A DNA stretch of 62,373 nucleotides from Stylophora pistillata (Eukaryota). The stretch is from the NCBI RefSeq assembly GCF_002571385.2, contig NW_019217792.1, positions 195,198 to 257,570 on the forward strand. The letters are read 5' to 3'. The notes beneath the pieces were generated by a model that was not told the DNA's origin, searched no databases, and saw only the letters and a list, made by a program, of their open reading frames with translations. Of this stretch, positions 2,525 to 20,850 are shown piece by piece. The position numbers and the translations under genes were made by a program. Positions within the stretch are counted from its first letter, which is position 1. The number at the start of each line of letters is the position of its first letter.

Positions 2525-4062
2525 TTTTTTGACCAATTAAAAATAATGGTAGTTTGGTTGGATAACTAGTCAATTCAGAATGTCTTTTTACAGCTTAAGA
2601 GGTCAAAAGAATTCATAACTGTTGGCACAAATTAGAAAGAAAAAATAATGATTAAGTTTTGTAACTTTTTTCAGTTTAAGTTAGCTTTTTGTAAGTGAAC
2701 CCACTATCTGCAACTTACTTGTAAAACCACTACTTAACAAAAAAGGAAGGCCATGAACATTTAAAGCACTTTGCACAAACTCTCCTTTAGTAATACAATA
2801 AAAGCATCTCAACGCGGAGGAAAATGTGTGTTTTGATAACCAGATATATAGGTAAAGTCTTCTCTCACGCTTAGTGCCCCCCCCCCCCCTCTCCTGAGCT
2901 TCTCCTGGCTTCTGTAGCAAGTGATTGGATGGGATGCCACTCCATCAGGGTTGCTGTTATCATTATATACTCTTGTGTGGGGTGAGGGTTAGGGTTTGAA
3001 CAAAAGCCAACCCTGCCTGAGAGCTTGAAGCTGAACTCCCAAACACAGAGTCTTGCTGGTTAAGGGTTAAAAACAGTCAATTTAACTCCTTTTTTTCCAA
3101 TGCAATTTTGACCAAGGCTTAATTGAGATGATCTACAATTCAAGGCCTCCTTCATGGAACTTGTCTCTCAGAGAAAATCAAATCCCATGTAACTTGAGGA
3201 AAACATGTTTAAGTTCCTTGTTTCCCACTGCCCTTCTTGATGAGATAGGATTCCTACTCACAGTGATGCTTGATCGTGGGAGGAGAATCACTCTGCAATA
3301 ACCAACATGTAACTATTGGCTGCCTTGTTTAACAAAGCCATTGACAAAAGCAGTAAACTAATGGAGGCATTTCATACTCAACAATGGTGAATCAGCCTGA
3401 TTGAATTGAATGATTATTGATAATTTATACTACCAAAACAGCATACAAATGAAAGTAGTGCTGTACAAAATATTTATTTTTAATTGAATCAGTCATAACA
3501 ATCAGTGCATATCAAAGAGCTATGGAGAGTGGCTTAGAAACAATTACAAGTAAGATACTCTCAATGCTAACTCTGGTGAGAAATACAGAGCATTACCAAT
3601 CAAAAATAACATCTGTCTTTTTAATATTTACCAAAAAACAGAGGTTTCTATTGAGACCCATCAGTAGCGTATTATTTTAGCAGCTATTGTTTCCCCAAAA
3701 TTCCCATGGTGTTTGTTGAAAAGGATGGTATAGTTTTCATGCAGTAACTCACTTCCTGGTTTAGAATTCTACTGACAATCAACCCTAATAAGAAAAGGTA
3801 AATATTGCTCCTCAAACAAAAGAAAATTAAAAAAAAGAAAAATGCTGGCCCTGCCATTTGTTGAAGAATGATGAAGAAAAAAGATAGACCACTGTGGTGC
3901 TTTGCTGTCTGTGTGGTCCAATAGAGTCAAGAAACCTAATTGGTCCCTCTACCTAAACTGCAATCTTGCTGAGTATCAGAAACACCCATCAAATCAATAC
4001 ATACATGGGATAACATTTGAGTTAAAATGACTTGAATTAATCCTAACTGGATGTTGCAGATG

Positions 4063-7000
4063 TCATTGTGGTTTGAAATACTTCCAGCACCGTCCAGTGA
4101 AAGCCTAAAATGCAAAGAAAGAGTAGATATTTATAGGTCACAAACTAAAAGTCAGAGAGAGGAAAACAGTTCAAAGATTTAATCAATATATTAATAATTA
4201 AAAGTACCGTGGTTTAGGGTGAGGTGATAGTAAAAACTTTTCATAGTACAAATAGACGCATAAGAAACTGCAATGTCTTTATTGTCATGACAGCAGTGAA
4301 ACTTCGCTTGTCACACCTTTTCAAAAATTCCATAACTTTTTTTTTTTTTTTGTTCTTCCTTCCATATCTAAATATTTTTACTGTCATCACTACTTGCTTC
4401 CATGCATAAAGGCTCTAAATTTAGGACTGAACAAGAGGCACAAAGGATATCACAATATCAACCTACCTTGAGGGTCCGGTTTTGTAAAACTTCTTCCACA
4501 CTAAGTTCAGTTTGCATTAACCTAAGCTGTAAATGAAAAGAAAAATCCAGACAAGCTGATTTCGTTAGTGATCCTCCCCACTATTTGCCATACAATTCTT
4601 ATGATGTTAGTTGGAGAATTTAGTATCATAATCAATTAAAAATCCCTTAATTGTATAGGTAATCACATGCTTTCAAGTGCAATTTAGAATAAATAAGCAC
4701 GAGTTAATATCTTCAAAGACTAACAAAATTGCATGAGCCCATAGGGCAAGTGCAATTTGTGGTCTTTGAAAAAATTTACAAGTGCTTATTTATTCCAAAT
4801 TGCATGAGAAAATCATGTGATTATGTATTAATAATATACAAGAAAAAATACGAGGAAGCTTCTCATAAATATGCAAAAGAAAAGCGTGTGCATCATGTGC
4901 AAAAATAATTTATTCAAACCCTGCAAGTGACATTGACCTTGACATTGACCAATCATTCTGACCAATCAGAATGTCCAGTTAGTTACTTTCTTTGCGCTGA
5001 ATTAACCCTCTTCTGCACTGAATTACCTCTCTTCTGCACTGAATTACCCGAAAACCGCATTTATCTTAACCAACCAGAACGGAGTAATTTTTTTCATGTA
5101 TATTATTAGGTTTGATATTGTTTTTTAATTCTCATCACTTGTCTGCTTGATATTGTATTGTTATTGTAAGGAGAAACTCTGGCTTGGTCATTCATTGGAG
5201 TTAAAGGGTTAATGACGGGAAAAACTGGAATATACTGACCAACTGTCCAGTTTTGCCCATCACTCTTGCATACATAGAGTATGTTCACTCACATAGTACA
5301 GAACTCATCCAAATTAATTAGAAAAAAAGTAGAATGTCGACACAAGAATAGAATGAAAATTGAACAGGAATGGCTTGTATACTTCAAGTAACAGGCTTTT
5401 TGCCAGATGGGCATCCATGCGGACCCCCACATTTTGAGGGAAATCCTCTTTTTTCTTTCATCTTGACATTGATCTGCTCCCTTTTAGCATAGCTAAATTT
5501 GGATAGCTTCACAAAAAATAATCACTATCTTTTTTCTTCCCTGTTGGATCATTTTGAGAAATTATTTTGCAGTCTTTTTCATTAGAGATGAGTGAAGATG
5601 GGACAGTAGTAAGAGTGCTCACTTCCTTGTGGCTCTTCTTGTCCACCATTCCCAGGTCAAATTGGAAGGTTGAACGATGAGGTTTTTGTGCAGGGAGGCA
5701 AACTGGAGGACCCACAGAAACTACCCTCTGGGCAAGGACAAGAACCAACAACAAACTCAACCTATATGTGAAGCCAGATTTGGGAATTGAACCTGGACCA
5801 CCGTGTTAGTAGAATGCCCACTGCTAAATTCCCATTATTAAATTCCCATTATTTCACATTACTGTTACCTTTGTTTGTTCTTTTTTAAGATTTCTCATGA
5901 TTTGACCATTCTCAGGGTTCTTTTCTGTTTCCTCTCTGAGTTGTTTGGTGTTTTCAGAAACTACTGTGATACATTTCTTAATGGCTTGATCTCTTGTCAT
6001 GTAGCCTGACATCAACTGCATATTGAAAAAGACATTGAAATAAAGAAAAATAATTCGAAGTAAGTCACTCAAAGAATATGCATAAGGTAATCATTACTAT
6101 TTAATGAATTCCTGATAGCATCATCACTTGGCATTATATTATTTGGGAACACAAGCATATGCAAGGCTGTGCTCTAAGGAAAACTGAATGGAGCCAGTGC
6201 TCTGAAACTGTGAAATCCACGGTGCTCAGCATAGGCTTAATATGAAAAAACTAAAATTCTTGAGTTCCCCAAGAGCAAGAGTAAGGCACCAGGGGCCACC
6301 AGGCACTGCTAGACCACAGCCTTTGTATGCAAGGTTATTCTCCATCTCTACACAAAATAAGTCCCTCACGACATTAAAATATTCTACTGAGAATTCTGGG
6401 TAGCAGGCAGACAAGTCTCCCATCTTTGATGCCTACTGAACAAAATATATTTAACCACCTTGTTATTACAAAGACTGAGTGAACCTTGACTTACTCTTAT
6501 AAGCTTAGCAAACTGACTGATCCAAATACTAAAGCCAGTTTTTTTTTTTTTAATGAGGCGGTGGTTGTAGCAGTACAGTTTGATATTGTTTCTCATTTAC
6601 CTCGTTATAGAGTTCTTGACATTTTTGTTCAGCATTGATTTCACCAACAAAGGAATCTGTTGGAATACTTGTGTTCAACTTATAAATGATTGCATCATCA
6701 ACAAGTCTTAGGACCTTCAATGCTTCCTGCAACAAGACCAGATAATAAAGAAATGTCTTTTTATTTCGGTTTTTTTTTTTTTTTTTTTGATGGAAGATGC
6801 ATGAGCCTCGCGGTCAACACAACATGCTCCGGATAAAAGTTCTTACTCTGAGCTCTGGCCAAGTAATTAACCCTTTACACCCTAACATTGTTATGCATAT
6901 TCTCTATACTGTTCTCTGTATATTTCCTTTGGAGCTGGCAAGGAGAATTTGTTTAACAATCAAGAGCTTCTTTAGTTTGTCATCAGTTCCTTCATTCTCA

Positions 7001-7928
7001 TGACCTTAAAATATGATCTAGGGTTAAAATTGCATTTGTAGGGAAGACACTTCTCTTCTCTAACTTCTCTTCTTCCCTGAGGAGTACAAAATGCTAAAAG
7101 GTTAGCATTATATCAAGGGAAAGAAGCAATTCTCTTGGTCACCTGGGGCTACAGTAAGAGGTAATAAGTTCATTTCCCATATAGTGAATGATGCATTCTG
7201 GTTCCTTACCTTAAGAGCTTTTTCATATTTAGTGCCAAAATGTTGTATTGTTTAACATTTCCACTGAGGATAGCGTTTAGAAGTAACAGATTCAGTCTGA
7301 ATTTTTGGTTACATTTTGCCAGGCAAAAGAGAAATTTCCCCAAGACAATGATTCCCACAGTTTCTCTTAGGGTTTCTCTGGCAAATGTACTGGTGATAAT
7401 GGATGACCAAGTGGTAAGTTTTCTTGAAAATGGTAAATCTGCAATAGGATAGGTTTGATTGGGTCTCTTCAAGCTATAGGGCTAACAGAAAAATACAGGT
7501 CTCTTTTATTGTAAGGATAGCCCAATCCTATGGGCACACACCCTCTTAACACCCTCTGACAACCCCCCCTCCCCAAGAAAAAAATATGTACTCATAAACT
7601 GTATTCAGCAGAAGTCCCTTGAAGTTTCCAGTTGTTTGACTTAACACTTAAATTTTTATCAGATGGTACTAATTACACAGAATGACTGTAAAATGTTACA
7701 TCCTTCCTAATAAGTAACTTCTGCAAGTAGATGACGAAATCAAGTTCTAGCCTATATTGGATTATGCTGCCTGGCAATGCAACTGTAGTGCAGTTTTTCA
7801 AACATTAGCACTAAAACACAAACGATATTTCAGCCGATGTATTCAAACATTACGGTAAAGCCAGATACCTTGAATTCCCCAAAATCTTCGCATGACATTC
7901 GACTCAGCTCTTTTCCACCGGTGGCCAT
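4063..7928 (-). CDS. CCDC58: CCDC58 / MIX23 mitochondrial intermembrane-space protein, 5 exons, 144 aa
   Basis: Exons 7869-7928 (MATGGKELSRMSCEDFGEFK), 6601-6726 (EALKVLRLVDDAIIYKLNTSIPTDSF...KCQELYNE), 5869-6015 (LMSGYMTRDQAIKKCI...LKKEQTK), 4467-4526 (LRLMQTELSVEEVLQNRTLK) and 4063-4104 (AFTGRCWKYFKPQ*). All introns are GT-AG and phase 0, and the motifs are typical of CCDC58/Mix23. Confidence 0.92.
5610..5810 (-). mobile_element. Degenerate tRNA-derived SINE
   Basis: B-box-like GGTTCAATTCC followed by the central GGTTGAGTTTGTTGTTGGTTCT...CTCCAGTTT domain. Related fragments lie at ~43990-44050 and ~46052-46200 (+). Confidence 0.55.
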
Positions 7929-8243
7929 TTTAATACACACGTGCAAAGTAGATGTTCTGCTGGTTGTTAAATGAACATGGTACTAGTCCGCTGACCAGGT
8001 AATGTCCCAAGAAAGTTACGTCATAAAGTTTTAACCACCTGCCGGTGTTCGAAAATGACTTTCCGAAGTTTAATGATTAATAGACGAACGCCAAAAATCT
8101 CGAAATAATGGCGTAATGTTTGTTTTTCAGACTGATTTTTGATCATTGCTCTCTGCTATCAAGAGGACAATTTTGAAAACTTACCATTGGATTTTGATGC
8201 GTTGAGCTCAGGGTCCAAAAGATTTTGATGGAATCATTAACTG
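7929..8243. promoter_or_regulatory. Putative bidirectional promoter between CCDC58 and the TTLL2-like gene
   Basis: The two start codons diverge with 315 bp between them. The interval is locally CpG-rich and contains E-box CACGTG (~7938), CRE-like TTACGTCA (~8016) and YY1-like AATGGC motifs. Confidence 0.65.
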
Positions 8244-10343
8244 ATGGCGTCCGTTGTGTTCCGGCTTTGCGACAAAGCGCCGGATATTCTCAGAGAAGTA
8301 TGTCTAGAACGTGGATGGGAAGAATACGACGAAAGTAGAGATGAATCGAATGGCGAGTGGAATCTATGGTGGAAAACTCAGGGCTTTACTTCAGGTGAAT
8401 TCGAACACTGTCGTCCATGGCAACGCCTGAACCACTTTCCCAAATCGACAAATATCACCAAAAAAGATGGTTTAGCCAGAAATCTTAGGCGAATGAGAAC
8501 TTCATATGGAGGCTCCATGTTTGAGTTTTTTCCACAAACATTTATCCTTCCTAGTGAGTTTAAGAAGTTTGTCGCAGAATTTTTTAAACAAGATAGTGGC
8601 CAGAGATCCAAATACTGGATCTGCAAGCCGACTGAGCAGTCTTGTGGAAGAGGAATTTTTATTTTCCAAGATTTACATGATCTCACTTACGACTGTGCTG
8701 TTGTTGTGCAAAAATACATAATCAAACCATTTCTTATCTCGGGTTACAAGTTTGATTTGCGTTTGTATGCCATAGTCACATCGTATCATCCTCTCCTTCT
8801 CTACATCTATCACGAGGGTCTTGTGCGGTTTAGCACAGAAAGATTTGATTTGTCCTCACTTGACAACCGTTTTTCACATCTTACCAACACTAGTATTAAC
8901 AAAACTGGACCACAGTATTCAGCAGAAAAAGAAAGCATTGGAACTGGTTGTAAATGGACACTGAGTAAACTACGTCATTTCTTTCACAAACATAACATTG
9001 ACGATCGCCTTTTGTGGCACCGCATTACATCCATCATAATCATCACACTGCTTTCACAAATGCAAGACATACCCAGTAATAGTTCAAACTGTTTTGAACT
9101 ATTTGGCTTTGACATTCTTATTGATGAAAAATTGAAGCCATGGTTATTAGAAGTGAATTTCTCACCAGCACTGGGTAATGATTGCAGTCAAGATGAGATA
9201 GTGAAGAAACCATTGTTGAATGATATTTTGGAGAGCCTAAACTTTACTGAGCTGGACATCAAGAGAGGGGAAAGAGAAAGAGGAAGTAATTCAACCAAGA
9301 AAAAGGGGTTGAAAGGAAGCATTGCAAAAAGTGGCTCAGCAAGAAATGGTAAAAGCGTGTCCTTAAAATCCAAAATTGGCTTCAATCTCTCTTCACTAGA
9401 AGCAGAATCCAGATTTAAGCAACATGGTGACTTTGTCAAGGGACCGGTTTTAGACGGCAAGAAGCAGTATGCTCATATGGGTCCTCAAAATCAAAAGCGA
9501 AGCTATCTACAAAGACAGAAAGGTGACATGACTCTGGCTGTTTTCAGTGAAAATGACAATAAAGCAACAAATTGCAACCATAGTGGCAAACTGCCATCTT
9601 CAAAGAACAGTTTTTGTAGTTATGGAAGACTAATCACTTCAGAGGATTTTGTCAAAGCTGGAAAAATCAACTGCAATGAACCTGGTCAAGATGAAATGAA
9701 CAAAAACAAGTTGGCATCATGTGATGATATAGGTTTTCAGAGTAATCCTGATTTTGCCACATTTGCAGAGAAAAATCTTTCACTTTCAACAGATCCAAAA
9801 AAAGAAGTTGAGAAAAGTTGCACAGTACGGGAACCGTTATTGTCTTCACCAACAATAAGAGGTCAAAGTGACGGTCAGACATCTCTGCATTTATCCCAAT
9901 CTGCAAACACATGCAAGCAGCTGCCACCTCACCTGCGCTTTTGTCGCTCTAATTCAGAAGCATCATCGCTGAAATCTCTTCATTTAGTTGATAAGGGCAG
10001 TTTGTCTAACGGAAGTCCAAAAACCTTGCACCACATTCCCTCCAAGTACTCAAGGTGCCCTCCAGGGAGAACTCCTAGAAACAAAGCAACTTCGGACATT
10101 GTGAAACTTCAGCCTAAAATTGGTAATTGCATTCTTGCCTTTCCTTTCAATGAAGTGACACATAAGGCCAGTAAAGGGAAGCTTGAGCAGAAGATAGTTG
10201 TTGAAGAAATCAGGAAAATGTTGAAAGCAATAAGTAATGACATAAAAACAACACCACTACAAACCAATGAGGAATCACTGGATTTACAAAAACCATTTTG
10301 GGGGTATAGGTTAAAATTCAACACCTTTTACAGCTCCTTATAA
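8244..10343 (+). CDS. TTLL2: Tubulin-tyrosine ligase-like polyglutamylase (TTLL2-like), single coding exon, 699 aa
   Basis: TTL ATP-grasp motifs: QRLNHFPK, WICKP...GRGIFIF, VVQKYI..PFLISGYKFDLRLY, EGLVRFST, HLTNTSINK, CFELFGFDILID..LKPWLLEVNFSP. These are followed by a long low-complexity C-terminus. The subfamily call is from recollection of TTLL2 motifs. Confidence 0.85.
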   Translation: MASVVFRLCDKAPDILREVCLERGWEEYDESRDESNGEWNLWWKTQGFTSGEFEHCRPWQRLNHFPKSTNITKKDGLARNLRRMRTSYGGSMFEFFPQTFILPSEFKKFVAEFFKQDSGQRSKYWICKPTEQSCGRGIFIFQDLHDLTYDCAVVVQKYIIKPFLISGYKFDLRLYAIVTSYHPLLLYIYHEGLVRFSTERFDLSSLDNRFSHLTNTSINKTGPQYSAEKESIGTGCKWTLSKLRHFFHKHNIDDRLLWHRITSIIIITLLSQMQDIPSNSSNCFELFGFDILIDEKLKPWLLEVNFSPALGNDCSQDEIVKKPLLNDILESLNFTELDIKRGERERGSNSTKKKGLKGSIAKSGSARNGKSVSLKSKIGFNLSSLEAESRFKQHGDFVKGPVLDGKKQYAHMGPQNQKRSYLQRQKGDMTLAVFSENDNKATNCNHSGKLPSSKNSFCSYGRLITSEDFVKAGKINCNEPGQDEMNKNKLASCDDIGFQSNPDFATFAEKNLSLSTDPKKEVEKSCTVREPLLSSPTIRGQSDGQTSLHLSQSANTCKQLPPHLRFCRSNSEASSLKSLHLVDKGSLSNGSPKTLHHIPSKYSRCPPGRTPRNKATSDIVKLQPKIGNCILAFPFNEVTHKASKGKLEQKIVVEEIRKMLKAISNDIKTTPLQTNEESLDLQKPFWGYRLKFNTFYSSL

Positions 10344-11373: not shown

Positions 11374-12131
11374 GACAATGAAAAAACTTGTCTCATGCAT
11401 GTCTGCTCTTTGGCATGAATCTTGTTTGCCTGCTCATTGCTTGCTAAAGAAGTGTAAAATTTTGTCAAAATAGAGAATTTTCATTTTGGCTAAAGTGCTC
11501 TAAGAGAAAATTTTGATTTGATGGAGAGAAACTGCTTCAGATGTCAGATGCGATACAGGGTGATTTAGAGTGCTTAATTAAAGCATCAATTTCAAAAATT
11601 TGGTACACAACTCTGTTTTCTAACTACAACTCTCTCCCTATTTAGCAATTGCTCCCACAATGAAATGTTTTCAGTTATTTTTTGGACTTTGATGCTAGTC
11701 AAAGTGTGCAAAAGATTTGTCACAGTCAAATCAAATCTTAATTTCTTCACTGTGGGGAAGGGGTGGGTGGGAGTTGGGAAGTTGAGTCCCTTCAGTAATT
11801 TTCAAGGATAGTCTTTATTGCAGCTGAACAACTCTTCTTTTTCCTGAACCTTCCCCTTCTGACCCTCAATTTCCCTCCCCCCCGGCCCAACACCCTCTCA
11901 AATTTTAGAAATGAGACTAATCCACCTTGAAAAGTTTCCCATCGCCAATGCTACCACTTCATGAAATTCTCTCAGCTTCCATAAGCGCACCCGCGTTGTT
12001 TAGAAGTGTACTTGTCAGCGGCTGCCATTTAAGTACATGTGATCCATTTCTGCATGTTTCATATAATTTGAGAATTAGAGAGAAGTTTTCTGTTATCTTT
12101 ACCTGTAAAATTCGAGGTATTCCTTGCTATA

Positions 12132-15100
12132 ATGTCGACAGATCAGCTGCTACTATGTTATAATAAGGGTTGTGGAAAAAAATACAAAGAGGACGAAAAT
12201 GGAGAAGGTAATGATTATTCGTTGGATAGTTGACAAGTACTAGTCTAGTAGTTCCGTCGAAATGACTTATCGCTTGCATGATACTCATTACTGTACAACT
12301 AATTTTACTTTTTCGATCAGTTTTAAAAGTGATATCTTTTCTACTGTGACTTTTAATATATTTTGAATGATCTGCAGCCAGTTTGGTATCCGACAGCTGA
12401 AATGTACTGAAACATATTTAATATCTAGTATGTACCCAGGTAGCACTTGTTATACGTTGAAAGGGAAATGTTTAAGGACATGTTTGAAATCAAAGAAAAC
12501 CAGAGACAACATAGTTGAATAATCAAATGAAAACCCAAATGGCCTTTTTAGAAAGAAAATTTGGAATACATGTAGATGATTGGGGAAATTAAAAGTTTGC
12601 ATTAACTCTTGTCATATTATGATACAGGTTCTTTTAGTTTTGGATATAACTATCATGCTTGTTTAGGCTGGTATAGATATAATTTCCTCTCTTTTCTGAG
12701 ATTATTTGAAATGTCTGTTGAAAACAAGTGATATCAATTTTTTTACAGATGTATGTTTACATCATCCTGGTTGTCCAGTATTTCATGATGCTCTGAAGGT
12801 AAGATAGTAGTGAATCATTCTAGTATTGTTGTTCAAGTCATAGTAGAGATGCACACACTCCGATTGGTCAAGGATTGCATCAAATCTTGCTCTAATCACC
12901 TCACCTGTGCAGGGGCGCTAGATTTCAAAATGGCTGCCTCAACTTTGTTTTGGGGATTATTCAACAGAGTTCACTTAGCCTGCAACCAAGAATTGTTTAA
13001 TATATCTGAGAGGGTTATTTGTAATTCTGGCCCAGGTTGTTCAAAGGTGGGTTAAGATAACCCAGAGTTAGTGTGAAATTTGATATCAGATCTAAAAGCT
13101 TTAAAAGAAAATTCAGTTCAATTCCATTTGTCTACAATTAATTGATGACTGAATGCTCTGAAAAGAATTGGGAAAATTAGTCCAAAATGGCTTTTGAACA
13201 GAGAAATATAGAAACCTATTGGTGCTAATCAGCCTTCAAACAACTGGGCCAGCTCTGCATTCATAACCAGAGCTGTGGTCTAGCAGCGCCCGGTAGCCCC
13301 TGGCGCCTTATTTTTGCTCTTGGGCGACTCAGGAATCTTAGTTTTTTCATAAAAAGCATATGCTGGGCACTCTGGATTTCAGCTTCAGAGCACTGGGCTC
13401 CCTTCAATTTTTCTTAGAGCACAGCCTTGATAACTAGTAAGCTTGCTGTCAACTCCAAGATAGAATTTCTCTTAAAAATAGCAACAGTAACAAGCAGACA
13501 ACAAGTGAGAATTAAGAAAATTATCAATGTGGAGATTATTAGTTGATCCAAAATTGAATTCTCCAAACTGAAAATCATAAGAATTGTATGACAAACACTA
13601 ATGAGAATTACTTAGGAGATCTTGGAAGGGAAAGGGTTAATGAACATGGTTACCAGTAGGTACACTTGCATTGACATTAATGCCATTTTTAAATGAAAAA
13701 TTTTAAAAATGGCAGACTTTTGCTTGTTTTTTCATTGTTTAGGTCTCTGTCTGTGGAGGCTAGTGCAGTGAACACAGACAAAAGATATGATCACGTGATA
13801 GATTGATCACTTGTAGAAATGGGAAAGAAAGAAAAAATGATAAAAATAATTTACTCTGATTTGTAGGGCTGGTCCTGTTGCAAGAAAAGAGTTACAGACT
13901 TTACAGAATTCTTAAACATCAAGGTAAGCTAGATAACTAAGCTTTATCTTTTTTTAAGGACATTTATAATTGGAAACTGGTATACATAACCAAAATGTGA
14001 CAAACAAACTATGTAACAGAGAACAGATTTCTCAAAATGCTTTCTTTTGCTAGGGTTGCACTAAATCATGCCATACTAATGTGAAACCTCCTGAACCAGA
14101 AAAACCCAATACAGATGACAAGGCTCTCGGACTTGATGAGGTGAGATTCAACAACTGTTTTTCAAGGCCAGGTTTTTATGATTCCATTGTGTCTCTACTT
14201 ACTTATAATCATGGATACTCTTACTTTTCAGGTGATAAAAGTTAAACCACCTAAACGAAAACCAATACCAACTGAACCTGTAGAAAGACCAAGGTATTTA
14301 TATACTGTTACGGTATTATCCAAACCGCCAGAAAGATACAACTCGTACAACCCAACTACTTTATTGACTGACTTAATAACTACGGAGCGAAATCAAAACT
14401 AGTACAATAACTATCCTCGTAACTTAGAGCCCTCTATGAATCATATAACTTCAATCTCAGTGCACTACCGCACAACTCACAGTTCTCTTGAAAAACTCTT
14501 AAAACTTGTCGACGCACACAATACTTTTTCCAACGTAGCCTTCCACACGGCTCACAACAACTCCGTCCGGCTCTTGCTCCTCTGGGCTCTTCGCAACAGC
14601 AGCTTTATCTCACTAAAAAGGCCTTTTTCTCTAAGCTAGCATGACTCCTTATATACCTTTCACAAAAGTTCTAGAATGTTCTGGAGATCTTTGATATTGC
14701 TATTTTTAGTAACATTACACTACGATTACATCTTAGCAAAAATATGCTGAGTCACGGTTCTAGAAAGTTCTTCTAAAAGTTTCCGCTTAGTCAGTGTAAC
14801 TAAGTGTTCTAGAAAGTTCTTCATGCTATTTTTAGGAATCATGTAACACCGCGCTCTTTGGAAAAATATGGGCGCTCTCCATAACAATACCAACTCAAAA
14901 CTGTTTATTATGATTTTTAATTTCATTAATTGAAAAAAAATACTCATAAGAAAAATCTTTGAGGGCTTTCTCTCTGAAATGTTTTGAAATAACGTTTACC
15001 CAAAATGTGTCATGTTTTAAGTAATACTATCTGTGTTCTTGTTTCAGTGATGACCTTCCTAAGATAAAACTTAAAATGACAGTAGCAGATTCTTTGAAGA

Positions 15101-18100
15101 AAGCCCTGGTAAAACTTAAAGACCAAGAAAAGGACAAACCTGGAGTTTGCGAGGGTAAGTGACTTGAAAAATGTTTTTCAGTTTATGTGACTTTTTGGGA
15201 ATTTGAATTTTTAGGTGTAAAAGTTGTATAGAATGAGAATACTGTGTAAGTGTACAAATGCTGTTAACCCTCAAACCCCAAGAAGTGATTAACAGGTAAC
15301 TTCTCCCTATAATATGTATATTTGTATATTGTAGATTTGTATATTTTTATTATTAAGATTTTCAAACTATTTTAACTATGAATTTTGTTTCTTGTATATT
15401 ATACACGTAATTCAGTCTTCGGACTGGGAGGTGTTTCTTTTTAATAAACGATTTATCTAACATCATCCATCAAACAGGTAATGAGAATACTCAGATTTAT
15501 CACATAAAAGTTGTTACCTTGATGTAACACCAAATTCTTGTAACTAATTTTTAAGGAAATAATTTGAATATATCAACAAAGTTGAAATGGTAAATTGGCC
15601 ACCGTTACGATTATAAAAGCTGACGTTTCATCAGAGCGAATCAATGGTGAATCATCGGTGGCCAATTTACCATTTCAACTTTGTTGATATATTCAAATTA
15701 TTTTGTTACCCCCACCGATGCAGCCCCAAACAGTTTCTTTAGAAACTATCAGCCTTTATTCATGTGTAATTTTTAAGGAAATGTGTAGCAGCTAGAGGGC
15801 AGAATTAACAGTCAGATCTTTGGAGTTAGAGGGTGAAAAAAAAAAAGTGTTCAAAAGTTGTGGCTGACCTTGGAAACAAGGATCATTTCATTTCAGGTAG
15901 TGAAACTGATGGTGGAATTAAACCTGGAACAACCTGCAAGAACAGTGGATGTATCACTGTAAGTTTTTCAGACTTTACTAAATTAAATGGGATGAGTCAA
16001 CCTTGGAAACAAAATTGTAACCCTGTTATTTGTTTTGCTATTTTTTAGTCATATGTAGATGAGAGTACAAATGATGATAAGTGTTGGCATCATTATGGAG
16101 TACCAGTGTTTCATGAAGGGTAAGGAACTGTTGACTTTGTTAGATAAAAATGACCCTAAGGAGAGGAAATACTTTCAACCCAGGCAAGGGGGAGAAGATC
16201 GCACTTCCACCCATAGGAAGTATTTTCCTAAAATTGAAATTGAGATGAGGTTAAGGAATCTTCTTTAAAAAAAAAAATAATTTACTGAACTTGAATAAAG
16301 TTTCCATGTTTTTGTTAGTCCCGGCAATCCTTAGTTACTCTACATTACTTTTAAATTGCTCATAATTCTTCTGTGTTCTACCTCAGGAAATGATTGTAAC
16401 GAACTTTTTTCCCAATTAACCCTTTAAGTCCTGAGTTGACCTCGTTCCCAGGGTCTCTCATCTTCCCGCCCCCTGGAGCGAGAGAAGAGAGACCCTGGGA
16501 ACAGGGTTGGTCTTAAGAGTGATTAGCCTCTGATTTCTCTTTACAGTATCAACCCTGATCAAACATTAACCCTTTAGCTGAGTGACCAAGACAGATTTTC
16601 TCCTTACAGTAGCAATGCAATGTTGAGCAGACAAGTAAAGAGAATAAAGAAAAATATCAGTTAGGGGATTATCAGTTGATCCAATACCAAATTCTCCAAA
16701 CTTGCACCATAAGAATTGTATGGCAGACAGTAGGGAGAATTATTAAGAAGATCTTTGGAGTGAAATGGTTAAGGTTGTAGAGAAATATGAAATGATTGCC
16801 AATACCATTGGTAATGTCTAGAGAACAGTATGGAGAATGTACATGCTGATGTTAGACTATAAAGAGTGAAAGGCAATTCACTTCCATGTGTTTTTGGGCA
16901 AGGCAACAGAAAGTCACAAGACCTCTTTCCACCCCGGAGAAGAACTGGGTACCAGGGGCCCTGTTTCTCAAAAGTCCCGGTAACTTAATGGGCCCATAAA
17001 GCTGTTCTGCTTTCATTCAAGATGGGGATTTCAAAAGTTTTGAGAATGTTACAGTAAAATTATCAGCGAAAGAAACAAAAAGGACTGGTTTGGCTGCCAG
17101 AACCTGCTTTCCTATCCTTTAAATTTTGATTTTAAAACATGGCTTCGGGCCCGTTAAGTTACCAGGACTTTCGAGAAATAGGCCTCAGGAAGTTGTCGGG
17201 GAATACTCACAAAATACTGAGGAGAGAGATGGGCTGGTTTCCTGTTCTTCCTCTTCCTGCTAGGACTTGAGTAACCCTTTCACTCTCATGGATACCCACT
17301 GTGTCATTTCACCTTAAACTGTCAATACATCATCCACCAGAAAGGTGATGAGAAGAAAGAAAAAAATATCAATGAGGGAATAGTGTTTGATTTAACATCA
17401 AATTCTCATAGCTCTAATTGTAAGAAATGTATTGAGGACAGAGAAGTGAATTGATAATGAGATCTTGGGAGTGAAAGAGTTGAACTTCAGCAAGATGGAG
17501 TTTAGTGCCCAAAAGGATTAACTTTTAATTACCTTTACCCAGTTGGTGAGGAAGAATTCAATATACTGGCAACTGATTTCAGGTATAAATTTTGGTCTTG
17601 TTGTCGGAAACGAACAACAGACTTTGATGAGTTCTTGAAACAGGAAGGATGCGCGTCGGGGTCTCACAGATGGGAACTAACGGAAGAGGTAGGTGGCATC
17701 CAAACTGATGTGTTGTTATAATTTGTACTGTGCAAGGCCCATCTATAGGAACTGTGGTGGGATATTTCGTGTGGTTTGTTTTTTTCGTCTCATTTACAAA
17801 TTTTTCATCAAATTGTAGAAAACCATAAAATATAGGCAGGGCTTGACACTAACAGTAACCCACTAGTGACAGACTAGTAGAAATTTGGCCAGTGGCTTTC
17901 GATTTCCACTAGCCAGTTTGGCTCGGAAACAAACTGAAATTTGTCATAACATCTAAGATGTCACTAACCACTCAGCTTGTAAGCTGAAAAGTTTGTCAAA
18001 CCCTGATAGAGGCAGAAAGAGAGAGAAATTTGAAGGACTTAGAAACAAAGAAAGATGGAATAAGTTTGGATTTTTTAGTGGGAGAGGATGGAAAAAGTAT

Positions 18101-20850
18101 TATAAAATATATATTTTTGGCATCATGCACACATTTAGTTTTTTATCTTCTTGATTTACTTTTATTGGCAGGAAAAGGCAAAAAGAGTTGTTTGCCGGTA
18201 AGAGTTTACATTAACTTTTCAAGCTCACTTTAGATCAGCCAACTGAATGGCCATAACAAGACAGTAAAGCCAATTTGAAATTAAAATCTCTTTGTCAGTG
18301 CCATGTGACTAATGCATTTCTTTTAGTCCCTTTTTAAACTTTTCATACCTTCAACTACAAATACTACTCTCTGGGTGTGTTTTCAATTGCAAAACTCAGG
18401 GGTACAAGGGATTGGAAGGTCATGACCCTGGCCATGGGTAATAACATTACAAATGGAACACTGAATTCAAAAATTGGGAGTGGAACTAAAAGTAGATTGC
18501 TTTGGTCACATCTATAACCCTTTCACTCTCGTTGTTAACCTTTTAATTCCCAGAAGTGATTACATGTAACTTCTCCCTTTAATATCCAGTTATTACCCAT
18601 CAAACAGGTAATGAGAATTCTCAAACGTATCTGGTAGAAATTTTTGTCTTAATCTAAATCCATATTCTAGTAGCTAAAATAAGGGAATGTGTAGCAATGA
18701 GAGGGGAGAATTAACTATCAGATCTCAGGAGGTAAAGGGGTCATCCTCGGTGTAAAACCTGAGGAGGTTTTCTTTGTTTCATGAGGTATTGTTTTGTTGT
18801 ACGCTATTGTTTATAATGTTTTGTTGTCTTTGTTTTACGTCACTCGTGAGCTTCACAGGTTTTTACACCGAGGATGAGCTAGTTAAAGGGTTGATAAACT
18901 GACAGGCAGAAAGGTGATGAGAAGCAAAGAAAATTAGGGAAATTAATTTTGTTATCAGTTAGGAGACAGTTTTTAAATCCAGGGAAATGGAAATTTCATC
19001 AAAGAATTCCTATGCAGACGACATGTTTGTGTTCCTTTCCAGGTATGACTGGTTCAAGATGGGAAACTTTATCGTCATTTCAGTATTTGCTAAGCTGAGT
19101 GATCCTCAACAAACTTTTGTAGAAGCAAATAAAACAATTGTAAGTTGAACATTTCAATACTATTGACAGATATAGGTAATGGACAAGTGACCAAATTCCC
19201 TGTGCATGTAACACTTTGCTGGCAAGAAACCATTCCATCCACATAACCATTCTACCTTTCGAAAAGTGTCCAAGTTCTCTTAAGCACCCATCTGTCAAAT
19301 AAGAACAACCCTACTTCCTCACTCTCTTAAATGGTAAGGATACAAAGAAACCCATTTCTATTTATAACCTTAAAGCTTCCTCTATAGCAGAATCAGTGTT
19401 TGAGAGTAGTAAGCATCCCCCTCCTGTAGGTGCCCCCCATTCACTTTTTAGCCAAAACTTTAATAAACTGCTGAGGTGCTTATTTGAAAAACAGTATCTG
19501 ACCAGCATGATTATTTATTTTTACTTCAGGTGAAAGCCCATGTGGTGTTTGGGGGCTCAAATGTATTTGAACTTCAGCTCAATCTTCATGGGGTGAGTTG
19601 TAGTTTAAAATTACTTTGGAAAAGTTAGCTAGGGAAATCCAATATACAAAAATCAATTAAGTATCATGATAGCAGTTTTTAAAATGAAGTATGTCTTATT
19701 GTCTTGGATGTAAATTTGATATTTTATGGCCATTTGGGAGAACACAATATCTTATTTTATTACACGACTCAGGCAGTCAGAGGGCCAATAACTAAAATCA
19801 ACCAATCAAAATGCTCTATTGCCAGTCAATATTTTCTCAGTATTGGTCCCGAATGGTTCCGAATGATACCGCACTTGTGTCCCTTTGAACTTCAGTCGTA
19901 TAATAAATCTCTTATTAACCAAGCTTGCTCGGGACCGTACTGGAAGAATATCGGCCCTCGGTCTTTTTTGTACGGACCTCGCTGCGCTCGGTCCGTACTG
20001 TCAAGACCTTGGGCCAATATTCTCCCAGTACAGCCCTCACGCTTGGTTAATAAGATATATATATAATATGCCCTCCTGAATTTAAGTGTTTGTTTGATGT
20101 TAATGTTGGAACGTTTATTCCTTGGCATTTGGTGTTGATGTCATCTCAGCTCACCAGTATTAAATCACAATTGAACCTTTGTAAGATCAGAAAGAAAAGT
20201 CTTTTGGAAAGAAGAGTGGGACTGGAAGGACAAAACAGGTTGTTTAAATTGGCTGAGACATAGGCATACTCAATTTGTTTTGGATTGAGCAACAGCCAAT
20301 CTAATAATAAGGAGTTTAGGAAAACTCAATGCTAAAACAAGTAAACTGTACAAAGTATTGCAGCGCCTTGCCCCAATATTGGTTTTAGATTCAAATCTGG
20401 TTGTTTTAGTAGGTGGTGCATGGTTTCCAGACCAATCACAAATTGATTGTAGTGAAGCCTCACATGATGAAATCCCTTGTCACTTGTAACATAATTGTCA
20501 GGCAGACTTCAGATAAGCAGACAAGTAGGAAATATTCAGATCGATGTCAGCTTCTGAGCAACTGTGCACCCCCACCCCTCCCTTAATCCAACAAGTGTTG
20601 AGTTAGGGGAAGGGTGGGTACAGAGTTGTGCAGATACTGATACTGATCAAAACATTTCTGTTAGGAAGGAGCTAAATCTTCGCACAATGGTTTCTTTTTT
20701 AAGGTGATTATTCCAGAACAAAGTTCAGTGATGTTATCCCAGACCAAGGTGGAGATAAAACTACGAAAAGAAGACATCGGAAGGTGGCCTTCTCTGGAAC
20801 TAAAGAAACCAACTGAAGAAAACCCAGTGAAAGTGGAAGAGTCAAAATAA
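12132..20850 (+). CDS. CHORDC1: CHORDC1 (CHP-1/Morgana), CHORD-CHORD-CS HSP90 co-chaperone, 13 exons, 336 aa
   Basis: Exons 12132-12207, 12749-12798, 13867-13923, 14054-14140, 14232-14293, 15048-15154, 15897-15958, 16049-16119, 17583-17688, 18172-18197, 19043-19139, 19530-19592 and 20704-20850 join in frame (1011 bp). CHORD1: CYNKGCG...[36 protein letters not shown]2: CKNSGC...[33 protein letters not shown] domain: CRYDWF...TKVEIKLRK...W. Confidence 0.95.
13030..13250. mobile_element. TIR-bounded MITE (Harbinger-like)
   Basis: GGCCCAGGTTGTTCAAAGG...CCTTCAAACAACTGGGCC inverted termini. Similar architecture occurs at ~16955-17186 and ~39937-40136. Confidence 0.6.
13268..13429. mobile_element. 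MITE with CA(G/A)...TG termini and 5-bp TSD (hAT5-like); second copy inverted at ~6162-6324
   Basis: TIRs CAGAGCTGTG / CACAGCCTTG are flanked by the direct repeat ATAAC. A homologous copy lies in CCDC58 intron 2. Confidence 0.7.
14306..14886 (-). mobile_element. Solo LTR (581 bp, Gypsy-like 4-bp TSD) in CHORDC1 intron 5
   Basis: TGTTA...TAACA termini with an ATAC direct repeat at 14302-14305 and 14887-14890. On the minus strand there is a TATATAA box (14649-14655) and AATAAA (14360-14365) in U3-R order. Confidence 0.8.
14668..14820. promoter_or_regulatory. Cluster of three heat-shock elements plus an ARE/AP-1 site in the LTR U3
   Basis: nTTCnnGAAnnTTCn at 14668-14682 (gTTCtaGAAtgTTCt), 14757-14771 and 14806-14820 (gTTCtaGAAagTTCt). 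GTGACTCAGCA on the minus strand at 14745-14755. Confidence 0.75.
15561..15766. mobile_element. Hairpin retro-insert (Penelope-like/retrozyme-type remnant) with 16-bp TSD
   Basis: Perfect 48-bp inverted arms at 15557-15604 and 15656-15703. Flanking direct repeat TAATTTTTAAGGAAAT at 15545-15560 and 15767-15782. A partial copy lies at 43583-43617. Confidence 0.65.
16417..16871. mobile_element. Nested TTAA-CCCTT...AAGGG-TTAA MITEs (piggyBac-type), representative of a family with >10 copies in the window
   Basis: An inner ~200-bp copy (16570-16768) has TTAA on both sides and sits in the TTAA of an outer copy. A palindromic GGGTCTCTC...GAGAGACCC insert lies at ~16439-16509. Related copies are at ~5105-5211, 6867-7027, 10970-11172, 13440-13640, 15264-15833, 17273-17482, 18536-18742, 22240-22375, 23198-23390, 28436-28650, 29839-30050 and 52261-52473. 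Confidence 0.75.
17837..18005. mobile_element. MITE CAGGGCTTGACA...TGTCAAACCCTG with 5-bp TSD (hAT5-like); copies at 56350-56512 and ~57677-57850
   Basis: Inverted termini. The TSD is ATAGG/ATAGA here and a perfect GCTGG at 56345-56349 / 56513-56517. Confidence 0.75.

Follow-up and report, generated by a model that had tools for sequence, protein, structure and literature searches.

Features of the locus: an antisense solo LTR in intron 5 of CHORDC1

The window, by which we mean the whole stretch of 62,373 nucleotides that was analysed, carries a gene whose exons were searched one by one for Pfam domains. All matches are on the plus strand: CHORD pieces at 12745-12800, 13861-13923 and 17584-17667, and after them, at 20683-20769, a CS piece. 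CHORDC1/morgana is characterised by a pair of CHORD zinc domains with a CS domain behind them, and as the genome contains no other CHORD matches than those of this gene, we regard it as the CHORDC1/morgana orthologue. This agrees with an earlier interpretation made from the letters of the DNA (the sequence-only reading), which had already named the gene CHORDC1. The gene encodes an HSP90 co-chaperone. The bins of RNA reads over its exons hold only reads with the first mate on the minus strand, which places the gene on the plus strand. Upstream of its start codon there is a perfect three-unit heat-shock element (HSE), a candidate for a native HSE of CHORDC1 (Table 1).

The solo LTR described here lies antisense in intron 5 of this gene. 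On the window strand the LTR ends read TGTTACGG...CCATAACA between the two ATAC copies, and the element has a 5-bp terminal inverted repeat, TGTTA/TAACA. Direct reading of the letters thus confirmed what had been described before, namely a 581-bp TG...CA element with an ATAC target-site duplication that begins, in antisense orientation, 12 bp after the exon-5 donor. In one RNA run (X22), seven molecule ends fell at 14621, close to where the transcription start is predicted. They could mark the U3/R border, but the sequence there is rich in indels and local alignments tend to break in it, so we did not rely on them.

Table 1. Features of the CHORDC1 locus and of the LTR in its intron 5 (window coordinates)
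Feature	Position	Strand	Remarks
Perfect three-unit HSE, candidate native CHORDC1 HSE	11841..11853	+	~290 bp upstream of ATG
CHORDC1 exon 1, coding part	12133..12207	+	starts at ATG 12133
CHORDC1 exon 5, inter-CHORD linker	14232..14293	+	donor GT 14294-14295
Target-site duplication ATAC, left copy	14302..14305	.	direct reading
Solo LTR, U3-R-U5	14306..14886	-	581 bp; termini TGTTATGG...CCGTAACA on LTR strand
AATAAA polyadenylation signal, near R/U5 border	14360..14365	-	kept in 10/10 aligned full-length copies
Predicted transcription start, U3/R border	14618..14626	-	inferred from TATA spacing
TATA box TATATAA	14649..14655	-	LTR positions 232-238; same place in most copies
Proximal HSE	14669..14681	-	LTR position 206; 13 bp upstream of TATA box
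bZIP-type site GTGACTCAGCA (ARE/AP-1/MARE-like)	14745..14755	-	adjoins middle HSE
Middle HSE	14758..14770	-	LTR position 117
Second bZIP-like half site TGACTAAGC	14785..14793	-	adjoins distal HSE
Distal HSE, GAACTTTCTAGAA on LTR strand	14807..14819	-	LTR position 68
Target-site duplication ATAC, right copy	14887..14890	.	direct reading
CHORDC1 exon 6	15048..15143	+	start exact, end approximate

Heat-shock elements and bZIP-type sites in U3

The U3 region contains three perfect three-unit HSEs, as the sequence-only reading had stated, and the proximal one is flanked by two imperfect units. At all three HSEs TTCnnGAAnnTTC is perfect; the whole 62-kb window has only four such sites, these three included, against an expectation of 1.3. 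For the comparison with shuffled sequence that had been suggested for these motifs, the LTR was dinucleotide-shuffled 20,000 times: three perfect HSEs never arose, and 0.65% of the shuffles contained at least one. The distal and middle HSEs lie within one internal duplication of ~49 bp and are therefore not independent events. No perfect three-unit HSE was present in R/U5 of any copy scanned.

The conservation of the HSEs across copies, the other check that had been proposed, was also examined. The HSEs occupy the same three LTR positions in copies of 69-100% identity. In 21 diverged copies the core retention was 62% for each HSE, as against 17% for random U3 windows of the same shape, and this level was reached by 0 of 20,000 permutations, in a test whose strength hinges on the quality of the alignment and which uses copies with a shared ancestry. 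It supersedes an earlier test on nine sequences only (p = 0.06), in which column variation was 0.049 in the HSE core triplets versus 0.148 in the spacers. The HSE/TATA layout already pointed out from the single copy is thus a conserved feature of the LTR family and not an accident of one copy, and the aligned copies show that the HSEs were kept throughout the history of the active lineages.

The claim that the LTR is also loaded with antioxidant-response elements is weaker than the sequence-only reading had it. There is one bZIP-type site, which contains the TGACnnnGC core expected of a target of Nrf2/CNC-sMaf and is conserved no better than other parts of U3 (column diversity 0.13, compared with 0.087 for the remaining U3). 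The core TGACTCAGCA occurs once in the window, and because 11% of the shuffles also yield one, the site alone is not beyond chance. GTGACTCAGCA is found in the young subfamily described below and in the window copy; older copies read TTAGTCAGCA instead. At the second, bZIP-like half site, the older copies L008 and L009/L044 read TGCTGACTCAGCG.

For comparison with host promoters we used only one hsp70 gene, that on C602, in which a pair of perfect HSEs precedes the TATA box. Among other hsp70-type genes, those on C21 and C128 had no perfect HSE within 800 bp upstream, and that on C3538 had a two-unit element only. A capture of the LTR promoter from the host hsp70 gene was considered and rejected, since the matching blocks were not collinear and the local alignment score of 33 was within the range of shuffled sequences (mean 22, maximum 36).

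Copies, age and transcription of the family

A genome search with the LTR, as had been advised, yielded 173-182 candidate loci (about 180), and the matches that were scored number at least 46. Nine further full-length copies of 638-660 bp have the same termini, with terminal point changes in L006 and L008, and most of them have a 4-bp duplication of their own; TTAA, CAGA, ACTA, CCCA, ATAA, AATA and TCTT were read at other copies. Beside one copy (L032), positions 4056-4378 hold the tail of an RT_RNaseH domain (Pfam, E 4.7e-20), a stop and GAAGGGGGAGGG, and the LTR follows from 4379; pol ends directly after RNase H, 46 bp ahead of the LTR. The common termini, the copy-specific duplications and the RNase H and polypurine tract beside this copy bear out the earlier view that the window element is a solo LTR of a genuine LTR-retrotransposon family.

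In the sister element L042, RVT_1 (7749-8354) is followed by RT_RNaseH (8367-8921), and upstream of RT there are Integrase_H2C2, rve and Integrase_p58_C. L042 and the tail of L032 thus both show the Ty3/gypsy trait of an RT_RNaseH-type RNase H after RT, and neither has the canonical PR-RT-RH-IN order with integrase last. This gene order would fit a Gmr1-like variant, an assignment that is provisional because L042 is degraded and has nested inserts. Neither a PBS junction of a 5' LTR nor an intact two-LTR element was readable in the assembly, as the interiors of the young copies are N gaps; the LTR pair on C987 (L031) likewise has an N gap between its members, and no ORFs.

A young subfamily comprises more than 15 copies, at 99-100% identity. 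The terminal branches of young copies measure 0.002-0.008, and that of the window copy 0.075. Although its private branch thus amounts to 7.5%, the window copy has lost none of the 27 HSE core bases and still has its TATA box. The chance of such retention under pure neutral decay is roughly 0.07-0.25, and the copy may be under mild constraint; all three HSEs are also kept by 4 of ~20 old copies.

The stretch occurs in RNA runs labelled 'coral metagenome', which bears out the probable coral of the sequence-only reading, here a stony coral. Reads from four runs, with coded conditions, were analysed. The LTR was covered by RNA in three studies, and in X21 and X24 80-98% of this was in LTR sense. 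The reads on the window LTR derive from the young subfamily: all 23 best-supported variant letters (23/23) are those of the young subfamily and not of the window copy. Reads with the window copy's own letters (such as A at 14318, T at 14373 and A at 14391) were almost absent from the four runs, which is weak evidence as the conditions are coded. Two bins on from the LTR (13984-14147) there was no minus-strand signal, and no joint of the LTR to CHORDC1 exons was among the joints listed. The family has therefore been recently mobile and its young subfamily is transcribed; the window copy is old and probably a relic in decay, whose motifs would all have survived by chance.

Proposed activation by heat-shock factor and comparable systems

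Probably the window element is an old solo LTR of a family with HSE promoters that would be fired by heat-shock factor (HSF), the window copy itself being a relic with no visible effect on CHORDC1. A Ty3/gypsy-type retrotransposon would have inserted antisense, 12 bp into intron 5, and LTR-LTR recombination would then have left the solo LTR. The family's U3 promoter consists of the three HSEs, each a putative trimer site for HSF and two of them paired with a bZIP-type site, with the proximal HSE standing 13 bp above the TATA box much as in an hsp70 promoter. Host HSF, the genes for which are present in the genome, would bind the HSEs under proteotoxic or heat stress, and transcription would fire ~30 bp below the TATA box. 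Host stress would in this way lead to a burst of genomic RNA from the active elements, as in ONSEN and the Macrostomum LTR families.

It is rather unlikely that the TTCTAGAA-based repeats are not functional HSEs, and that they serve another factor or constitutive or germline expression in a family that does not respond to heat. Such a view could draw on the young-subfamily transcripts in runs of coded, possibly unstressed, condition, on the single internal duplication that gave rise to two of the HSEs, and on two HSE-bearing copia families of Macrostomum that are unresponsive to heat (PMC12801592). It is difficult to reconcile, however, with a motif that is a canonical alternating nGAAn array of 3-5 units in phase, that has an hsp-promoter-like spacing to the TATA box and is of the same type as that upstream of the host hsp70 gene, and whose core triplets vary less than its spacers; STAT sites require TTCnnnGAA and do not fit.

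We consider it improbable, more so than the preceding possibility, that the window copy has been co-opted and, under heat, either enhances CHORDC1 from within the intron or fires an antisense transcript that modulates the splicing or expression of this gene. Such a link has its appeal, the product of the gene being an HSP90 co-chaperone. The LTR is 2.2 kb away from the start of CHORDC1, with a splice donor at a distance of 12 bp, and in spite of its age none of its three HSEs, nor its TATA box, has been lost; another family copy lies ~7 kb upstream of ABCA-type exons. The four runs, in which the coded conditions make an absence of signal weak evidence, nevertheless gave no locus-specific reads, no antisense run-on past 14306 and no listed LTR-exon joint. 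The LTR's own AATAAA should also end an antisense transcript inside the LTR, before exon 5. Retention of all three HSEs is not unusual among the old copies, CHORDC1 has an upstream HSE of its own, and the antisense orientation, which is usual for LTRs surviving in introns, is the pattern of a neutral survivor. With a promoter and a terminator of its own the window copy forms a self-contained unit, and no effect of it on CHORDC1 is visible in the data at hand, so the suggestion of the sequence-only reading that it is an intronic enhancer or antisense promoter of this gene is currently unsupported.

That the element is not an LTR at all but a MITE, SINE or segmental fragment with a chance cluster of motifs is scarcely credible, for although no two-LTR full-length element is readable in the assembly, the TG..CA termini, the 4-bp duplications that differ between copies, the RNase H, stop and polypurine tract directly upstream of one copy, the arrangement of TATA and AATAAA in LTR order and the shuffling result all speak against it.

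The preferred reading, an HSF-fired LTR family, has precedents. In Arabidopsis and other Brassicaceae, the Ty1/copia element ONSEN (ATCOPIA78) is activated by heat; binding of HsfA2 is proven for it, and its solo or new copies can make neighbouring genes heat-responsive. The coral family resembles ONSEN in having an LTR promoter with HSEs, which recruit heat-shock factor in ONSEN and would putatively do so here. As ONSEN is a copia element of plants and the coral family is gypsy-type and from an animal, this likeness would be a convergence and not a sign of membership. The coral family shows the layout of HSE-driven LTRs, in which HSEs with three or more units lie in U3 ahead of the TATA box and the start site: its HSEs are at LTR positions 68, 117 and 206, and TATA is at 232 (Table 1).

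In the flatworm Macrostomum lignano, Ty3/Mdg4 LTR families of the Mag, CsRN1 and Gmr1/Osvaldo clades carry HSEs, and their heat induction and its HSE dependence were shown by RNA-seq, qPCR and a mutated reporter (Mob DNA 2025, PMC12801592). The coral family shares with them an animal host, a Ty3/gypsy-type pol and a U3 in which canonical nGAAnnTTCnnGAAn sites, between one and four of them, come before the start; the Gmr1/Osvaldo family belongs to a clade with integrase before RT, an order apparently common to L042. It differs in its host, a stony coral, in a heat response that is predicted from sequence, and in the pairing of two HSEs with bZIP-type sites. The coral family appears to be a cnidarian addition to the known HSE-bearing LTR elements, and our literature search found no HSE-bearing LTRs in corals or cnidarians. 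Exact-pattern scans of metagenomes for the proximal HSE-TATA block and the U5 end gave no match and are uninformative on other corals.

Other mobile elements also carry HSEs. Helitron1_CE of Caenorhabditis elegans spreads HSF-1 sites and can bring host genes under heat-shock control, a rewiring that was demonstrated by experiment (Garrigues et al., eLife 2019, as cited in PMC12801592); unlike the coral LTR family, it is a rolling-circle DNA transposon. In another coral, Acropora hyacinthus, LTR elements were up to 250-fold higher after heat, and the work as summarised there gives no cis-regulatory explanation (Traylor-Knowles et al. 2017, as cited in PMC12801592). The conserved candidate HSF sites in the LTR promoter of the present family would offer a concrete explanation, in cis, for such heat-induced bursts of LTR RNA.

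It is conceivable, and we put it forward tentatively, that in this mobile, Gmr1-like Ty3/gypsy-type coral family heat at the level of bleaching would trigger transcription, and perhaps transposition, via HSF, and that the ~180 solo LTRs form a reservoir of heat-responsive promoters or enhancers, some of them wired to host genes such as the ABCA transporter and possibly CHORDC1. If heat drives the family, warming events would bring more insertional mutation and a spread of heat-responsive promoters in coral genomes, with a bearing on somatic and germline variation and on the evolution of bleaching-related stress networks. Together with Brassicaceae and the flatworm, this would then make three independent cases in which LTR elements have hijacked the heat-shock response. 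The copy near the ABCA-type exons (L023, C44:788295-788825) is a diverged one, in sense orientation, and carries a five-unit HSE.

The solo LTR in CHORDC1 and the family to which it belongs

Every structural statement of the sequence-only reading on the window copy was borne out when the sequence was read directly. A TG...CA element lies antisense to CHORDC1 and is flanked by an ATAC duplication: the first ATAC (14302-14305) precedes TGTTACGG..., and the second (14887-14890) comes after ...CCATAACA, which ends at 14886. The element begins 12 bp inside intron 5, past the exon-5 donor (exon end, 14293; GT, 14294-14295). The claimed three perfect three-unit heat-shock elements (HSEs) and the spacing of about 13 bp between the proximal HSE and TATATAA were both found, and the proximal HSE has two more, imperfect units. 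An internal duplication of ~49 bp holds both distal HSEs, and a bZIP-type site adjoins each. Three HSEs occurred in none of 20,000 dinucleotide-preserving shuffles of the 581-bp LTR and at least one in 0.65%; in the entire 62-kb window, four perfect three-unit HSEs were observed versus 1.3 expected.

Features of the window and of related loci in the same genome
Feature	Position	Strand	Remark
Perfect three-unit HSEs (TTCnnGAAnnTTC)	14669-14681, 14758-14770, 14807-14819		inside window copy
TATATAA	14649-14655	minus	13 bp below proximal HSE
ARE-like site GTGACTCAGCA	14745-14755		window copy
CHORDC1 exon 1	starts 12133		ATG
Perfect three-unit HSE (TTCCTGAACCTTC)	11841-11853		~290 bp upstream of CHORDC1 ATG
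CHORD-domain matches	13861-13923, 17584-17667	plus	genome search
Extra CHORD piece	12745-12800		exon-by-exon Pfam scan
CS-domain piece	20683-20769		exon-by-exon Pfam scan
hsp70 promoter, L061 (G000:C602:26000-26900)	HSEs 468-480, 557-569; TATA 711		imperfect array upstream of TATA
L042 domain-bearing stretches	2806-3800, 7342-7527, 7749-8921		degraded sister element

The genome search that had been proposed for other copies with the same termini gave at least 46 scored matches among 173-182 candidate loci. Nine other full-length copies (638-660 bp) have the termini TGTTATGG...CCGTAACA in common, and most of them carry a 4-bp duplication of their own (TTAA, CAGA, ACTA, CCCA, ATAA, AATA); such copies are solo LTRs. 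At L032, a family copy on contig C1662, the LTR has no duplication. An open frame upstream of it matches the end of Pfam RT_RNaseH (E 4.7e-20) and closes with a stop; 46 bp follow, and then a polypurine tract, GAAGGGGGAGGG, that abuts the LTR. This LTR is therefore the 3' LTR of an element. The common termini, the locus-specific duplications and this one copy with RNase H and polypurine tract confirm that the window copy is a solo LTR of an LTR retrotransposon family.

In the assembly, N runs take up the remaining interior of L032 and the interior next to every other young copy. In L042 (G000:C260:312500-322499), a degraded sister element with nested insertions, integrase pieces (H2C2, rve core, p58 C-terminal domain) stand upstream of RVT_1 and RT_RNaseH, and a related LTR follows; in both L032 and L042, pol ends at RNase H shortly before the LTR. 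This suggests a Ty3/gypsy-type family with Gmr1-like order, integrase before RT, and so a cnidarian case of that arrangement; the assignment is provisional because of the insertions nested in L042.

The family has been mobile recently. More than 15 copies are mutually 99-100% identical, and in a maximum-likelihood tree the terminal branches of these young copies measure 0.002-0.008. The window copy, with a private branch of 0.075 (median of old solo LTRs, 0.072), is typical of the old copies and branches below the lineage leading to the young subfamily. At L032, 216 bp of host DNA past the 3' LTR (5018-5233) are repeated before an N gap (2757-2972) with 97.7% identity; this resembles a hemizygous insertion with both haplotypes assembled in tandem and hints at a very recent insertion.

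Conservation of the heat-shock elements

In a ten-copy full-length alignment, the HSEs occupy LTR positions 68, 117 and 206; the TATA box follows at 232, and an AATAAA stands near 520. Two or three perfect HSEs are still present at equivalent positions in copies down to 69-77% identity, and no perfect three-unit HSE was found in R/U5 of any scanned copy. The conservation check proposed in the sequence-only reading was carried out on 21 diverged, non-redundant copies: the nine-base core was perfectly kept in 62% per HSE versus a mean of 17% for U3 windows of the same shape, and none of 20,000 random window triples equalled this retention. A smaller test on nine sequences gave p = 0.06, the diversity of the core triplets (0.049) being lower than that of the spacers (0.148). 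We regard the HSEs as a feature of the family, and at the level of sequence the proposed coral LTR family with a stress promoter has good support. The retention of 62% is close to the neutral-decay prediction for terminal branches of ~0.07 if the ancestor had all three sites; we therefore read the pattern as purifying selection on the HSEs where lineages are active and as neutral decay once copies are solo.

The antioxidant half of the claim fared less well. The ARE-like site is present, but a single such site arises by chance in 11% of shuffles; it is no better conserved than its surroundings (diversity 0.13 vs 0.087 background) and older copies have TTAGTCAGCA at its position, so this half is weak.

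A diverged member, L023 (G000:C44:788295-788825, plus strand; 531 bp, duplication TCTT), carries a perfect HSE of five units, with TATATAA 13 bp below it. This copy is in sense orientation to ABCA-type exons that begin ~7 kb downstream (C44:795583 onward). HSF DNA-binding domains are encoded at four loci in the genome. For the hsp70 gene read in L061, one of several hsp70 matches on contig C602, two perfect three-unit HSEs precede the TATA box by 150-240 bp, and the promoter is a useful native reference; the likeness of the LTR to it was not beyond chance.

HSE-bearing LTR promoters are established in the plant element ONSEN. The coral family shares them with ONSEN and with families of the flatworm Macrostomum lignano, its own heat response being inferred from sequence. 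As the plant and flatworm cases are known already and literature searches turned up no cnidarian LTR described as carrying HSEs, the coral family would add a cnidarian member to a known kind of element. In M. lignano (four Ty3/Mdg4 families, one Gmr1/Osvaldo), mutation of the HSEs abolishes the heat response, and for the coral Acropora hyacinthus the same paper notes heat-induced increases in LTR elements of up to 250-fold, without a known cis element (PMC12801592; 2025).

Transcription of the LTR and the question of CHORDC1

The stretch occurs in RNA runs labelled 'coral metagenome', so its source is a coral. Reads were aligned to window positions 13000-17900 (4.9 kb) at 84% likeness, a setting meant to capture reads of the family as well as those of the locus. 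The three raw-read libraries, X21, X22 and X24 (coded conditions), are stranded; in the CHORDC1 exon bins, all first mates fall on the minus strand. Reads over the LTR were mostly opposite to CHORDC1 in X21 (40-56 vs 5-11) and X24 (25 vs 3.6) and of mixed orientation in X22; the dominant orientation is minus-strand RNA, the sense of the LTR. Nearly all of them differ from the window copy. Their best-supported variant letters equal the young subfamily at 23 of 23 positions, versus 18-19 of 23 for older copies, and young elements are therefore the source of the transcripts. In the poly(A) contig run X1, summed depth over R-U5 (14312-14639) was ~5x10^5 versus ~200 on the CHORDC1 exons, a poor expression measure but a very large difference. 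Two X1 contigs have loose ends at 14302, where they run past the U5 end into ~174 nt unlike the window, which may be the leader or primer-binding region of full-length elements that are expressed.

The HSE-HSE-HSE-TATA layout of U3 is kept in a family whose young members are transcribed in the LTR sense. Under heat, host HSF trimers would bind the HSE arrays and drive minus-strand transcription from ~14620; a transcript of the solo LTR would stop at the LTR's own AATAAA (14360-14365), so that this copy would be a closed mini-unit, with little read-through expected into exon 5.

Only two CHORD-domain matches were found in the 397.6-Mb genome, both in the window, and scans of single exons against Pfam added a further CHORD piece and a CS-domain piece, the domain order being read exon by exon. 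This identifies the gene as the CHORD-CHORD-CS co-chaperone CHORDC1/morgana, with the LTR antisense in intron 5.

Regulation of CHORDC1 by the window copy, as had been proposed, was unsupported. Almost no reads carry the private letters of this copy, the runs of coded condition gave no minus-strand signal in the second bin to the left of the LTR (13984-14147), and there was no LTR-CHORDC1 exon joint among the joints listed. A possible enhancer effect on CHORDC1, whose start lies 2.2 kb from the LTR, likewise found no support. The gene also has a perfect HSE of its own upstream of the ATG. This may be the native heat-shock element of CHORDC1, in which case those borne by the LTR would be redundant.

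Other repeats in CHORDC1 introns (15460-15787 and 16608-16771) drew very deep RNA coverage from both strands (1,000-2,500 per bin for X21 and X22) and showed many loose ends. They belong to abundant transcribed repeat families that have no relation to the LTR, and a related piece was found within L042 (5401-5679).
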